Shown: positions 49,727-56,970 of the stretch, piece after piece
How the letters are laid out: every line of letters starts with the position of its first letter
Numbering within the stretch: the first letter of the stretch is position 1
Origin: Hyphochytrium catenoides
Taxonomy: Eukaryota > Protista > Hyphochytriomycota
Assembly (NCBI GenBank): GCA_900088475.1
Contig: FLMG01001670.1
Coordinates: forward strand, 89,849 to 153,848
DNA length: 64,000 nt
Direction of reading: 5' to 3'
Position numbers and translations under genes: made by a program
The notes under the pieces: model-generated
Database searches by the model: none
Told to the model about the DNA's origin: nothing
The model's input: only the letters and a program-made list of their open reading frames with translations

Positions 49727-51443
49727 TTAGGTCTCTTCATATTCAGCTCCGTTTGTCGTGTCCCATTTGGCAGCCAAGAGCTGCTTTCTAGTAAGAATTG
49801 GGTTCTGAGAGTTTTTGACGTCCTGCGCCACGTCAGCGACGTTGATGGCGTCAATGAGTTTGGACAAAAGAGGCGCCTTAGCAGCATTCTCTTCCGCGAC
49901 GATACCACCAGAGGTAAAATCCTCCACCCGGAAGACGTAGAGATGTGCGATAGCAAAGCAGAGCATCTCAATACAAATGATGAAGTCTTGAAGACCATCA
50001 GCAAGTTCAGTCTGATCCCAGCATTTCTCGGGCGTGCCTGATGGGCAGGCGGGCAAGCAAATTAGCAGATATCGCACACCAGGTATGAAAGAGACAAACG
50101 ATGAAGATGAACAGACGTCAGAAGCGAAGTGCGATGGCTAAGAAGCAAAAGAGGAAGCCCAAGAGCGATGAAGGCAGACAAAAGGACGAGAAGAAGTCAA
50201 TGAGGAGAAATACTGGGTATAACCTCCAAAAGGAGAAGGGGTTGGCGGCTCTGATGGGTGTGCTAACCTTCACAGAAGTGGAATGTTTCTCCTGAGATGA
50301 CATCGAAGTAAATCAATGCCGATATCAGCACCGACTGCCAATAAGTGAAGAACACAATCGCCTTGATACTGAGGATCTTATTCACTGGCTTGATGGGTGC
50401 CAGCTCCTCCCTGGTACCCACGTAGAAGAGGATGAGGCAATACATGGCCCATATCTGGCTGCAGTTCGTGATGAAGGCTACATAAGGGTATCCTCGATCA
50501 TAGCGAAACTCTCCATCACCATAGACTCCGGCTGTTGTCAGTTAGAATAATAGAGGGGATCAGTTCAGTCCTACATTGGCCGATACTCTTACACATTTTT
50601 GGAGGGGTAGTAACAGGCCACATCAAGAGACTTGTATGAAAGGAACAAAGGGATGGAGAGAGAGAGAGAGAGGCCGTGTGATTTGGATAAGCAGGAAAGC
50701 CAAAGTCCTAAAAGAGGTGATACACAGCAGGACGGGAGCCAGGGGTGGAAACAAAGACAATACTAGAGGCGGACGAGGAGATAATGCGCTTACCTAGTGC
50801 GCAGATAAGGGTGGTCAGCGCCATAAAAAGCTTGATAGGCACGTATTGTAACACTCCTACCGCGCAGTATTTCAGAAACTCGCTCCCCATGGTCCAGTTC
50901 CGTAAACAGCAAAACGGTGAGATGTGAGACACCTGAGCCTTCGACCGGAGGGTGTCTGCCAAATGCTCTGTGCCTCCTAGGTACTCCACCAGGAAGGTAA
51001 AGAAGGAGTAGATGACAAACGCCTCATAGCAGTCCCGCAGTATTGAGAAAATCTGGGCCAGATGACAGTTGGGGAGGATAGGAGAGTTGAGGAAAGAGGA
51101 AACGTGAGGGGCTAATTCATACAGAGAATGTCAAGTCGTGCTTGCATCACTCCCAACTTGCCCTTCTTTCGTACCGACCCTACAGCTCCATTAACCCTCT
51201 TTCGCTACCTTAAGTCGTGTATGTGGCACCTCTTCGTACCTGTGCTTGCTTTTGAAATACTAACCCGAGCCATGATTCGCAGGCATAGATAGGAACCATC
51301 ATCAGGATACGGACGATGCTTCTCCTGATGAGCTTGTGAGGGTTCTCTCTGAGATGCATGTATATGTGCGCAGCCGAGAGGGTGGACGCAGCCACAGTGA
51401 AGAGTCCTGCCACGAGGTAGACGACAGAAAGTACCTCCACCAT
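49727..51443 (-). CDS. TMEM184: Organic solute transporter alpha / TMEM184 family protein, multi-exon
   Basis: IVRILMMVPIYACESWLGL, RDCYEAFVIYSF, GVLQYVPIK, SQIWAMYCLILFY, KILSIKAIVFFTYWQ, LQDFIICIEMLCFAIAHLYVF. Confidence 0.92.
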
Positions 51444-52105
51444 ATTCCTTTGAGTGGGACTACTAGAACTGGCCTCTGCTGTGAAGACTGCGAATCAGGT
51501 CTGTAGGAAAAAGTCGATGCCTCTCACATCGCGGATCGCTACTACCGATTGCCCGAACAAGGTATTGGCGAACGCCCTGCCTTCTGTTGGCGGCCCTTTC
51601 TCCCAAAGTAGGAATACCTGCTAGAGGGTGTCAGAGCTATATAGTCTCTAATAAGCTCGAGGAAGGCCTCGATGAGGCGACGGCAGCAACAAAGCTTCAG
51701 AATGACGATCTCTAAAATTCAGTGAGGAGCTTTCTCCAGATAATAACAGTCAGCACTGCTGCGAGACAGAGCTACATACAATCAAGGGTCAAGAGATGAA
51801 GAGAGAGGAGACATAGAAGACAGAGGATCGATTATAAGAGCGAGTGGAACATTCCGCAATTTCGATAATCAACCACTTTGCGTATTCGGTTACTGGACTT
51901 AAGTAACTTTCACCTAAAACTCTTCTCGGATCGCCGTCAGACGCGGGAATTCCTGAAAAGTGTTTACTAGTGCTTACTATTATTCTCTTCCCACATCAGA
52001 ATTGTTCGACGGCCAACCATAGGCAGCATTGCACACTGTTAATTTTGCGCGGAAAGCACCAAGCGCTGTTGCCAGCAGCAGCAGGCAGCTGAGATATTAT
52101 TTATT

Positions 52106-54577
52106 ATGAACAGCGTAGAAGAGCGCCTCTCAGATGATGCAGAGACTGATGAGATCACTGATGATGTTGGTGCCAACAACACCCTTGCTGGTGCCTCTCA
52201 TGGCGTCTATCTAAGGTCTGCTGTGAAGCTGTTGACCTGGCTGTACGGTCATAAGAGAAGGCACCTCCTTACAAGAGAGTTTCTCGAAGCATTGCAGAGA
52301 TATTCTTCTTCTAGCAGGAGAACGAAGAGGAAGGATAGACAAACCCGCGGCGATGGTAGTGATGACGACAATGCTGTGACTGCGGCTTCTTCTTCTCTCG
52401 TCGTTCGTCCTAGTGCCACCGCCAATAGTGCTTCCAGTAGTATCAGTAGTAGTGCTACTGCTGCCGCTACTGCTGGTAGTAGCGGGCAGCTAGATGAAGC
52501 TGATGCTCCGTCATTACCCTGCTCGCCAGCTCCATCCTCTTCTTTCAACCTGCAAGAGTCAGTCGTTCGGCAGGTACTGCTTAAGGAGCCAACAATTGCT
52601 CCACTCCGTTTTGACGATTTCACTGCAAGAGACTTTCTGACGTGGATCAACACGCTTAGAAAGAGGAATGGGGAAAGGCCAGGCTTCTCCACCTTCAACA
52701 GTCATAGGGCAGCGCTGTTCAACCTCTATAGGGGTTACGGGAAGACTGTGCCGAGGACTTTCGAGGCAGAACTCAAGAGTCATTACAAAGGTCTGAAACG
52801 CAAGACAAGCACCTCAATCATACGCGAAGGTATTGAAATACCTATTGCTGGTAAGGACCCTCTTCCCTTTGGGCTGTACAAGTTTCTTGTATTGGAGATG
52901 CTGAAGATGAAGACCCGTGATTACATTTTTGCTCGGACATTTCTGATAATAAGCTGGAACCTGATGTGTCGTGCGGGAAATGCTGTCTCAATCCGCCTTG
53001 ACCACATTGATTTTTCGTGTGACGCGATGAGAATCTACCCTTCGCATATGAAAGATGATCAATTCGGAAAGAGGCCAAGAAGGGACCCGCGCCACGTCTA
53101 CGCCAATCCTCTTTCTCCAGCTGTGTGTCCTATCCTTGCTATCGGTATCTACTGGCTGTGCTTTCCCTTTCAGACAACAGAGGAACGTCTCTTTCAAGGG
53201 AACAGCCAGTCTGACAGGTTTCGTAAGATCCTTGCAAAGTGCTTGAGACTGCCACACGTAATGGAGGAACTGGAAACCAGAGGTATCCAGCCGGATGATT
53301 TAGGTTCTCATTCAGTAAGGAAGGGCGCTGCTATCTACGCCTCCTCAGGATCGCCTTCAGCGCCATCGTCTACGGCTATTCAGTTCCGAGCAGGCTGGGT
53401 ATCAGGAGGTGTACAAGATACATCTTTGCGGTATGAACCGGCGGGTGACATGTATGTAGGCAGGACAGTCTCAGGGCTTCCCTTAGACAAGCCTGAATTT
53501 GCAATGCTGCCTCCTCACTTTAAAGGGTGTGACAGAGACAAGATTAAGCAGGCCCTGGACATATGCTATCCTGGCCTACCGCCCAATCTTAGGCGGACAG
53601 GAGAATTCGCTTTGGCTTCAGTGTTATATCATGCCACTTTCCTCCGTGAGACGGTTCCAGCTAGTCATCCTCTCCTCCAGACCGTACCGTTTAGGTCCGA
53701 TATACCCGTCATTGAGGAGCTACGAAGGAACGTAGTGTGTGGCATGTCGCAATTAGGCGATGACAGTCTGCGAGCCACAGGGGTACCAGCTCATGTTAGC
53801 GTTATGGCAGAGCTTAGAGAGGTTTGCCTACAAGTAAAGGAGGGAATTCGGCTACAGGCTCATCAGCAGGCAGAAGTAAAACGGAATGTAGTGGACGATA
53901 TCGTTAGAGCACTGGAGGGTCGAGCGCTCGGTGGTACTAGTAGTACCGTCACAGCTGCTGGCCTTAGAGACACCATCATGGAATGCTTTACGGAGGCTGG
54001 TGCGAGCACGTTGCGCAACATTGGTGGGTATGGCAGCGCGGCCCAAGCGACAAACTCTCATCAGGGAGAAAAAGCCACTTCTTCTACTCCAACGGCAGAT
54101 GATAACAGAACTATGGTCGGGACTGAGGGAGGAGGAGGAGGACTATTCCGCGAAGCAGTGTATATGTGGGGTGGCACCCTCCATCACTTTCCAGAGGATT
54201 TTCATTTACCAAATGGCACTGTCGCTAACGCGTGGCAGCTATGGTGCTGCGGTGACGCTGCAAAGCGCTTCCCTCCTCTGAAGCGATTGCGCCCGCATGA
54301 TCTCAAGGACAAGAATGAGAGGAAACGCCTTAGCGAGTACAAGTACCTGATGCTCTGCATCGAGAAGAAGGCAGAGGAACTGGGCCTTCGCCAGCCGTCA
54401 TCCTGGACTATCGAAGAGGCAATACGGGTCTTCACTCTGTGTGAAGCTGCGGTAGAGGTCAGGGACATGTCAGAGAAGCAGAGAAAGCGCCGAAAGACAC
54501 AACTCAGCTGGGTGACCGTAGCGACTCTGAAACGGAAAGAAGAGAGGGAAAATAGATCAGTGCCCGAAAACACCTAA
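52106..54577 (+). mobile_element. Crypton (CryptonS-like) tyrosine-recombinase gene, intronless 823 aa, possibly domesticated
   Basis: HRAALFNLYR, HYKGLKR, GKDPLPF, SWNLMCRAGN (R289), HMKDDQ (K316), DPRHVYANP...CPILAIGIYW, GSHSVRKG (H402, R405), RAGW (W431), LRYEPAGDMYVGRTVSGLP, ATGVPAHV, and C-terminal YMWGG...PEDF.LP...AWQLWCCG. This is the motif order I recognise from oomycete-type Crypton proteins. No termini found. Confidence 0.85.
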
Positions 54578-55689
54578 ACTGTGTTGTAGCTCACACATTT
54601 CGTATTACCGAAATCAGCTAGACGCAAAACACCTATCGTTCTTCTTTATCTCTTCACTTTCCCTCAGACTTAATCTGGGGAGGACAAATTAAACTCGGGG
54701 ATTTTCCGAAATCACGTCTGCACCAGTCTGTTGAGAAGGAATGGTCTTGTGTGGCTGGCCCCAGCGCACAACGGACACAACGGGCTGTACAGACCTAAAC
54801 TGGTCCTGCTTGTTATACAAAAATAGAGCTGATGATGCTGTGCGTTGTTCGATGTAATGTAACGTCTCTTGGGAAGATTTGATCTTTATGGAAAGTCATG
54901 GAAGTTGTTGAGATGCTGAGAGAGGCGGGTCAGCTGAGAGACAGACGACTCTGCTGGAGAGGAGGAGAAGGAGGAGAAGACAGGGACTGGTGAAGACAAG
55001 AGGACGGACTGGAGAGACACTGTGAGAGAGAGAAAGACGAGTTTTTGCAGAGAGAGGAGAAGAGTATGGGAGACAGAGAGAATTGGAGCCAGAGAGTGAG
55101 AGAAGAAGAGCCAGACAGACGCACGGAAGACAGAAGCGCATCCTTATTAGAGAGGAAGGGAGAGGGAAGCCAGAGAGAGGAAGGAGAGGGAATGAGTAGT
55201 TACCCGCCTTTCCTACCCTCGTTCCTGCTGCTTCGCTCTCCTTCCTGGTGGTGGCTGGGAGAAGGAGATAGAAAGCCATGGAACTAGTAGGGGTGCTCCG
55301 GTTATAGAAATAGAGTAGACCTAGACCCAATGACCGATAATAGGAATATCATTGAACCTCTTTATCCCTCTCCTTCTCTCTGTTACCTCGCTTTATGCCA
55401 GAAGCTGGCGCCATCCGTGGTCGCCATCGCTAGCACTGTACCAGCACGATTTCTTATAAGATGGCGCCATCCTCCTCGCTATTTGCCACTTGTTCGGGCC
55501 GCGAGCCTTTCAGTCTCAAGTTCTCGTGGCCCCTCTCGTTCTCCTCTCCTTTCTTTCAGCTTCCAGCTCATATAACCCAGCTGTCGTCTGTCTTCAGGCG
55601 GTCCGTTACTATGAAATTTCGCTTGACGGACACACCCTAACAGACGCAAGGAGAAGAAAGAACAAACAGCATAGGAAACTCTCACCACC

Positions 55690-56970
55690 ATGGGTCTCGC
55701 AGTCAGTCAACCTTCGGTCCCCGGTCCAAAGAGAAGCGTGGTTGTCGTTGGCGGGGGATACGCAGGGGTAGCCATTAGCCAGGAGTTGGAAAGGCAAGGG
55801 TTTCAGGTCACGCTCATTGAAAAGAAAGACTATTTCCTTCATTCTGTCGGATCTCTGCGAGCTGTTTATCACATTGGTTGGGAGAACAAGGTCGTCATTC
55901 CCTATACCAACTTACTGAGGCAAGGAAAGGTGATACAAGGAGAAGTCTTATCTATCCTTCCTGACGAAAAGACGGTGGTGTTCTCAACAAATGCAGGAGA
56001 ATTAGCACCGGCAGGTCACGGGGAGCAAAGGATCGGGTATGATTTCTTAGTGGTTGCCACGGGAAGCCCCGCACCTCCGGCATTTCCTGCTCAACCGCCT
56101 CCATCGGCGCTCCATCGCGAGCAATATATTCAGGCTGTCTCTGCTTACAGAGAGGCAGTGAAAGGCGCAAAGAAGGTGGTGATCATTGGTGGAGGGCCAG
56201 CGGGAGTGGAGTTGGCAGCAGAAATAGCAGAAGGATACGGAGGAGAGAAAGAGCTAACTATTATACACTCTGGAAAGACTCTTCTCAGTAACTCGCTCCC
56301 ACCTCTAACGCCAGAGATGACAACAGCAGCGCTGCAGCGCTTAGCAAAACAAGGCATTAGGGTTCTACTAGAGGAGAAGGTGGACCTGTTAAAGTGGAAC
56401 AGCATAGCAAAAGAAGGAAGCCAAGCCTTAGGACTCTCCTATCACACTGGCCTCACAGTGGTAACCACCTCAAAAGGATCCGAGGTCCAGGCAGACATCG
56501 TCATCAACTGCATTGGGTCAGCGGGTCCTATGAATGGAAAAAGGAGTGCTCCTCCATTCCTTCCTGCTGCTTGGCTAGATGAGCAGCAGAGGGTTCGCGT
56601 CAATAACCATCTTCAGGTGTCATCGGTTACAGAAGGGAATGTCTTTGCCCTGGGAGACGTCACAGCCCTGTTAGAGACAAAGCTCGCCTATTATATCAAG
56701 GAGCAAGTTCCTATAGTGAGCAGAAACATCCTTCTTCTCTCACAAGAGGATGCAGAAGTTCACCGGGACGGGGGCAATTCATTGAGCACCTACAATGTCC
56801 ATGAGAGGGCTACAATGGCGCTGGCCCTAGGGAGTAAAGATGGCCTCCTTCAGGCCAATGGTAAGTACCTTGGCTGCCTGGGCTCGTTCATGATAACCCA
56901 AGCCAAAAGTAAGCAGCTAATGGTCTCGGAGCAGTGGAAAACCTTAGGGTTGTCTGCTCCCTCCTCGTAG
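55690..56970 (+). CDS. AIFM2: FSP1/AIFM2 (AMID)-like NAD(P)H:quinone oxidoreductase, N-myristoylation signal, intronless
   Basis: MGLAVS N-terminus, VVVVGGGYAG, HSVGSLRA, YDFLVVATGS, VVIIGGGPAGVELAAEI, TIIHS, RVRVNNHLQV, VFALGD, KSKQL. Confidence 0.85.
   Translation: MGLAVSQPSVPGPKRSVVVVGGGYAGVAISQELERQGFQVTLIEKKDYFLHSVGSLRAVYHIGWENKVVIPYTNLLRQGKVIQGEVLSILPDEKTVVFSTNAGELAPAGHGEQRIGYDFLVVATGSPAPPAFPAQPPPSALHREQYIQAVSAYREAVKGAKKVVIIGGGPAGVELAAEIAEGYGGEKELTIIHSGKTLLSNSLPPLTPEMTTAALQRLAKQGIRVLLEEKVDLLKWNSIAKEGSQALGLSYHTGLTVVTTSKGSEVQADIVINCIGSAGPMNGKRSAPPFLPAAWLDEQQRVRVNNHLQVSSVTEGNVFALGDVTALLETKLAYYIKEQVPIVSRNILLLSQEDAEVHRDGGNSLSTYNVHERATMALALGSKDGLLQANGKYLGCLGSFMITQAKSKQLMVSEQWKTLGLSAPSS

Follow-up and report, generated by a model that had tools for sequence, protein, structure and literature searches.

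An open reading frame of 823 codons in the genome of Hyphochytrium catenoides (Hyphochytriomycota) raises the question of what a tyrosine recombinase becomes when its nucleophilic tyrosine has been replaced by serine and the remaining catalytic residues persist. The gene lies in a stretch of 64,000 nucleotides (assembly GCA_900088475.1, contig FLMG01001670.1, forward-strand positions 89,849 to 153,848), here termed the window, to which all coordinates refer unless another contig is named. A preliminary description of the window had recognized in this gene a Crypton recombinase devoid of its catalytic residue, and had proposed its independent domestication as a non-cleaving DNA-binding factor. 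Three other explanations have to be weighed beside this proposal: 1) a recently inactivated copy of a mobile element; 2) a recombinase that still cuts DNA with a different nucleophile; and 3) an error in the sequence itself.

The reading frame and its nucleophile column

The reading frame, hereafter the query, occupies positions 52106..54577 of the + strand (stop codon included) and encodes an intact CryptonS-type protein of 823 amino acids, as judged from the frame itself, the family alignment and an AF2 model. No stop interrupts its 823 codons, for which the chance probability at 50% GC is roughly (61/64)^823 ~ 1e-17. From the N-terminus, its parts are a Ser/Ala-rich low-complexity insertion (aa 66-148, 52301..52549), which is specific to the query and is missing from both a paralogue in the same genome (C1619) and the closest outside protein (P0001); a helical, core-binding-like N-terminal domain (aa 149-270, 52550..52915), recognized from the AF2 model and its alignment to the N-terminal domain of Cre; and a catalytic-fold domain (aa 271-480, 52916..53545), delineated by the family alignment, the model and its structural matches. 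The latter contains the complete R-K-H-R-W set, namely R289 (52970-52972), K316 (53051-53053), H402 (53309-53311), R405 (53318-53320) and W431 (53396-53398). The nucleophilic tyrosine is missing; at the nucleophile position, W+9 as in Cre, codon 440 is TCT (53423..53425) and specifies serine, and a tyrosine, Tyr443, is encoded by TAT at 53432..53434. All these residues, the TCT codon, the insertion and the freedom of the frame from stops and frameshifts had been listed in the preliminary description, and our reading bears out each of them. The query thus combines an open frame with the loss of transposition competence (Tyr to Ser), one of the features by which domestication is recognized.

When query residues 150-560 were searched against a word index of 5.8 billion proteins, 235 homologues passed the threshold of E <= 0.001. 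The best 120 of these, which are 39-59% identical to the query, were aligned by means of MAFFT together with the query and its paralogue (n=122). Those with named sources come from Phytophthora, Nothophytophthora, Nitzschia, Aphanomyces, Lagenidium and Globisporangium; the others are encoded on metagenome or metatranscriptome contigs. The column of S440 contains tyrosine in 119/122 sequences, serine in two (the query and its own-genome paralogue) and histidine in one, and the columns of R289, K316, H402, R405 and W431 are conserved in 118-122 of the 122. The motif AGW..GGVQ.TYLRY, which the preliminary description had cited, essentially matches the family consensus. The local pattern of HS.R.GAA, followed by GW, eight residues and Y.R, is the motif of Cre as well.

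The preliminary description had named Tyr443 as the residue that might prove to be the true nucleophile. The corresponding column is variable (Y103/F10/H4 plus others among the 122 sequences); hence, Tyr443 is not the family nucleophile, and we rejected it as an alternative to the residue at position 440.

No serine-bearing relative from outside the H. catenoides genome was found among the best 120 of the 235 homologues. A scan of metagenome DNA with the motif W..G.VQDTS.RYE, a search of low power, gave 0 matches against 9 for the tyrosine version. Loss of the nucleophile was seen in one of the 120 intact family reading frames from outside this genome, P0034 of Nitzschia inconspicua, where tyrosine has changed to histidine. 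As a near-identical sister copy (P0027) retains the tyrosine, P0034 is a recent mutant, and the pair provides an example of, and a baseline for, ordinary recent inactivation.

The query groups with stramenopile Crypton proteins, possesses their conserved C-terminal region and gives no match to GCR1_C in Pfam. By sequence and domain architecture it is thus a CryptonS protein, a placement based on comparison with proteins of the family. Like the CryptonS transposases of oomycetes and diatoms (Kojima & Jurka 2011, PMC3212892), with which it shares a sequence family at the identities given above, it joins a tyrosine-recombinase domain to a conserved C-terminal region and lacks GCR1_C. It differs from them in having serine where they have the nucleophilic tyrosine, in its single copy and unique flanks, and in the extra Ser/Ala-rich insertion.

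Predicted fold and the C-terminal domain

Searches of Pfam, and of PDB sequences with both the single protein and a family profile, gave no recombinase match; the recombinase fold became visible only through structure prediction. An AF2 model of residues 140-823 (pLDDT 87.6) matched Cre/Tre in Foldseek with probability 1.0, and VIA-align returned Z scores of 15.3 for Flp, 14.3 for Ndc10 and 12.5 for Cre. Many of the Cre rows in VIA-align end with model residue 296 paired to Cre 319; as the numbering of the model runs 139 behind that of the protein, W431 falls on Cre W315 and, if there is no gap, S440 on Y324. The predicted structure is thereby confirmed as a two-domain C-clamp of the Cre/Flp/Ndc10 type of tyrosine-recombinase fold. 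Taken together, the alignment and the predicted fold fully support the initial identification of the gene as a CryptonS-type tyrosine recombinase that has lost its nucleophile. Flp and Ndc10 outrank Cre as structural matches, yet the spacing from the tryptophan to the nucleophile position is Cre-like (W+9) and not Flp-like (W+13).

A further domain, conserved across CryptonS proteins, lies at the C-terminus (aa 680-823, 54143..54574, + strand; aa 676-823, 54131-54574, in a slightly wider delineation) and is confidently predicted to fold by itself. Folded alone it was modelled with a pLDDT of 94.5, and comparison of this model with solved structures yielded no match, the best Foldseek E value being 3.8 and the best VIA-align Z score, over 48,161 chains, 3.5. 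On the strength of these models, the CryptonS C-terminal domain is a conserved transposase domain without a counterpart among solved structures.

The locus and the family copies in the genome

Ordinary genes surround the query. Upstream and on the opposite strand lies exon 1 (51240..51443, -) of a divergent gene of the Solute_trans_a (TMEM184/OST-alpha) type, which starts at 51443, 662 bp from the ATG of the query, in keeping with the head-to-head arrangement at about 660 bp reported earlier. Downstream are a Pyr_redox_2 flavoprotein gene (55690..56970, +), an ordinary host gene for which no homologue above 35% identity was present in the protein collection searched, and a methyltransferase gene. 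The GC and GC3 of the query are similar to those of its neighbours. The query reading frame with its flanks is single-copy in the genome, and across the 61-Mb assembly neither intergenic flank recurs, save for short GA-rich matches. A GA/GAG-rich low-complexity tract at 54900-55330, in the downstream intergenic region, is weakly matched (70-80%) by six other contigs.

CryptonS elements are bounded by terminal direct repeats of 5-6 bp, mostly TATGG (PMC3212892). Around the query, the only direct or inverted repeats are 12-15-mers of the kind expected by chance, and the reading frame is not bracketed by direct copies of TATGG; on the + strand, TATGG does not occur from 50500 to 53802, and its first occurrence after the stop codon is at 54887. 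The terminal repeats and the several copies expected of a mobile CryptonS element are hence both absent here, and the earlier statement that no element ends are visible holds.

Six-frame searches of the genome with the query and with its paralogue recovered the same loci, of which only these two are intact. The paralogue is a reading frame of 753 amino acids on contig C1619 (81271-83529), with kinase and LRR genes as its neighbours, and is 46-48% identical to the query. It too has serine at the nucleophile column, encoded by TCT as in the query (AGWSLGIVQDTSHRY), and it carries the further substitutions R289H and H402Q, so that its R-K-H-R-W set is incomplete. As the neighbouring synonymous sites differ, the common serine codon is not the product of a recent conversion tract. 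These observations also bear on the possibility that TCT is a sequencing or assembly artefact for a true TAT. A single base separates the two codons; against such an error, the same serine codon stands on another contig, in a diverged context with differing synonymous sites. With TCT present also in a paralogue of about 47% identity, a sequencing error is implausible, and we assign this explanation a negligible probability.

The divergence between the two genes is considerable. The query, the paralogue and P0001, a tyrosine-bearing protein encoded on a Logan contig of 2.6 kb, show pairwise identities of about 46-52%, with dN of about 0.44-0.49 and synonymous sites that are saturated for both NG86 and YN00. 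Between the query and the paralogue dN is about 0.49 and dS is saturated, and 202 of the 340 codons for identical residues differ (59%). Saturation and the proportion of differing codons indicate that there has been no recent gene conversion, and that both frames have stayed open throughout a very long divergence. Conservation between the pair tracks their domains, with identities of 57% in the catalytic region, 56% in the C-terminal region and 24% in the linker. In the family, 62 columns reach a conservation of 90% or more, and each serine-bearing protein keeps 56 of these (90.3%); the family median is 98.4%, the 5th percentile 91.9%, and P0001 keeps 61/62. The query departs from five highly conserved columns in a lineage-specific manner, but has no stop or frameshift. 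Constraint has thus shifted in both serine-bearing proteins, though neither reading frame is disrupted.

About ten other loci of the family are present in the genome, all with stops. The two that cover the nucleophile site cleanly, C3518 and C2090, encode tyrosine with the codon TAC. The decayed copies are 82-93% identical among themselves at the DNA level, and three (C2472, C701 and C1476), which are 82-83% identical over 1.5-1.8 kb, have in common an internal deletion that brings about aa 134-223 next to about aa 672-813. These identities and the internally deleted copies indicate that a tyrosine-bearing Crypton was formerly mobile in this genome. The three deleted copies probably represent non-autonomous CryptonS elements whose spread followed the deletion; comparison of their ends gave no clean common terminal motif. 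C3518 (the whole 7.4-kb contig) and C2090 (1-10000) are about 90% identical in DNA over more than 5.5 kb, an identity that extends well past the decayed tyrosine-bearing frame and marks a larger repeated element.

The copy-number comparison called for in the preliminary description thus gave a single-copy query and no near-identical tyrosine-bearing copies in the genome. This bears on the possibility that the query remains a catalyst, cutting with Ser440, with a neighbouring tyrosine (Y443 or Y450) or with a tyrosine donated in trans by Flp-type cleavage. Flp cleaves DNA in trans, and it is among the closest structural matches of the query; a catalytic role would also accord with the complete R-K-H-R-W pocket and with the presence in both copies of serine as opposed to the more conservative phenylalanine. 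Nonetheless, tyrosine-bearing members vary (F/H) at Y443 and Y450, which are hence not catalytic there, and the paralogue with the same serine is also without R289 and H402. Moreover, we know of no enzyme of the tyrosine-recombinase fold that uses serine, whose side chain is much shorter than that of tyrosine, and the genome contains neither an intact tyrosine-bearing CryptonS partner nor multiple copies that would indicate mobility. We consider continued catalysis quite improbable.

The other possibility is that the query is a recently dead copy of a low-copy Crypton, in which Y440S arose by chance and stops have yet to accumulate, the serine of the paralogue being an independent accident. 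The intact state of the remaining catalytic residues in the query fits such a history, as does the typically very low copy number of Cryptons (PMC3212892), and the Tyr-to-His change of P0034 beside its near-identical sister demonstrates that such accidents do occur. In opposition to it, we estimate that under neutral decay the nucleophile codon would be hit before any disruption with a chance of ~1-2% per copy, and here both of the only two intact copies in the genome have lost the nucleophile. The five losses at highly conserved columns, which came about without disruption, also speak against it, as do the unique flanks and the lack of visible element ends. Furthermore, no copy in the genome is closer to the query than about 60% amino-acid identity; its lineage hence bears no sign of recent activity. 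On balance a recent death is unlikely.

This alternative also draws on the phylogeny, where monophyly of the serine-bearing pair is unsupported. Three trees were built without the nucleophile column, with 77 taxa, with 28 taxa including own-genome fragments, and with 22 full-length taxa. A supported clade unites the query, the paralogue, P0001, P0025 and the own-genome fragments (SH-aLRT 99; 97/91; 96/95); within it, the branching is not resolved in any of the three trees. A constraint that unites the serine-bearing genes lowers lnL by 9.6 when the fragments are included (AU p 0.058) and by 1.5 for full-length sequences (AU p 0.195), and they appear as sisters in 2% of bootstraps. Their status as sisters being unsupported, the trees do not date the serine of the query. 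The three possible pairings have 4/6/5 derived residues in common, among which Y440S alone falls at a highly conserved column. The terminal branches of the serine-bearing genes (0.63-0.68) exceed that of tyrosine-bearing P0001 (0.47) only modestly. The nearest tyrosine-bearing relatives use TAC and both serine-bearing genes TCT, which tilts slightly towards a common origin of the serine. Either history favours retention: a common origin implies very long survival without the nucleophile, and two independent changes would suggest selection for serine.

Proposed retention without cleavage and its known counterparts

Our preferred reading, which we hold with moderate confidence, is that the query and its paralogue, as found in this one genome, are CryptonS-derived proteins retained for non-cleaving binding or synapsis of DNA. 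As serine is present in both the query and a highly diverged paralogue, the two have probably been retained for DNA binding without cutting. A CryptonS-type transposase gene would have ceased to serve transposition, and selection would have kept a protein that does not cleave; what has been retained in the query is the predicted two-domain clamp, the C-terminal domain and the putative phosphate-binding pocket (R289, K316, H402, R405 and W431). With the pocket and clamp kept and serine in the place of tyrosine, binding without cutting would be expected. By analogy with nucleophile-dead Cre, the protein may bind, bend and possibly synapse DNA, most likely sitting on uncut DNA as a dimer or tetramer. 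Its candidate roles are those of a host DNA-binding or chromatin factor, or of a dominant-negative repressor of related Cryptons, with purifying selection presumably acting on such a non-catalytic role.

The domestication proposed in the preliminary description has thus gained a second intact serine-bearing gene with R289H and H402Q, the decay of every tyrosine-bearing copy in the same genome, and flanks that are unique. It is tempered by the query keeping every other catalytic residue: all five persist, plain DNA binding does not obviously need them, and their presence fits a recent loss. It is tempered too by the trees, which do not support the two serine-bearing genes as sisters.

A narrower proposition is that serine itself is the selected state, having arisen twice or having been kept since before the saturating divergence. 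We think this very improbable; were it so, the two proteins would represent a new class of tyrosine-less recombinases with a complete phosphate-binding pocket, functioning as non-cleaving synapsing or bridging factors of DNA, or possibly as users of serine or of a nucleophile supplied in trans.

Returning to retention as non-cleaving proteins, several known systems offer points of comparison. Nucleophile-dead Cre (Y324F) still binds and bends its sites and brings them into synapsis, but does not cleave them. This behaviour is the one proposed for the query, and a structure of the mutant (PDB 5crx) is among the structural matches of our model; it differs in being a laboratory mutant, whereas the query is a naturally retained gene. 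In nature, MrpR/YopR and SroF, the master repressors of the phages SPbeta and phi3T, have a tyrosine-recombinase fold that is used for DNA binding only and is devoid of recombination activity (PMC10516654; PDB 9rd5/9rgl). SroF matches the query structurally with a Z score of about 9. These are bacterial phage proteins with no sequence relationship to the query, and MrpR keeps its tyrosine and has lost the Arg and His residues, the opposite of the pattern in the query.

A further group is that of the Crypton-derived host genes, which include the animal DUF3504 genes KCTD1, ZMYM2-4, QRICH1 and KIAA1958, and yeast Cbf2/Ndc10 and Gcr1 (PMC3212892). Like the query, they have lost the catalytic tyrosine, and their products serve as DNA- or chromatin-associated factors; one of them, Ndc10, which employs this fold solely to bind DNA, is among the top structural matches of the query (Z 14.3). 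In contrast to the query, they stem from CryptonA or CryptonF, have lost most of their catalytic residues and have been conserved in many species. The query is of CryptonS origin, retains the whole transposase architecture and five of the six catalytic residues, and is known from one genome. Domestication has been documented for CryptonF in fungi and CryptonA in animals, and the survey of these elements gives no instance for CryptonS (PMC3212892); nor did we find one in the literature.

If domesticated, the two full-length, tyrosine-less genes of CryptonS origin in this deep-branching protist would be an independent instance of Crypton domestication. It would be an early-stage case, in which the query is without the nucleophile only and the paralogue is without three catalytic residues. 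The two genes form a natural series for asking which features of a recombinase stay once cutting is lost, and the query protein is readily testable for the synapsis of DNA without cleavage.
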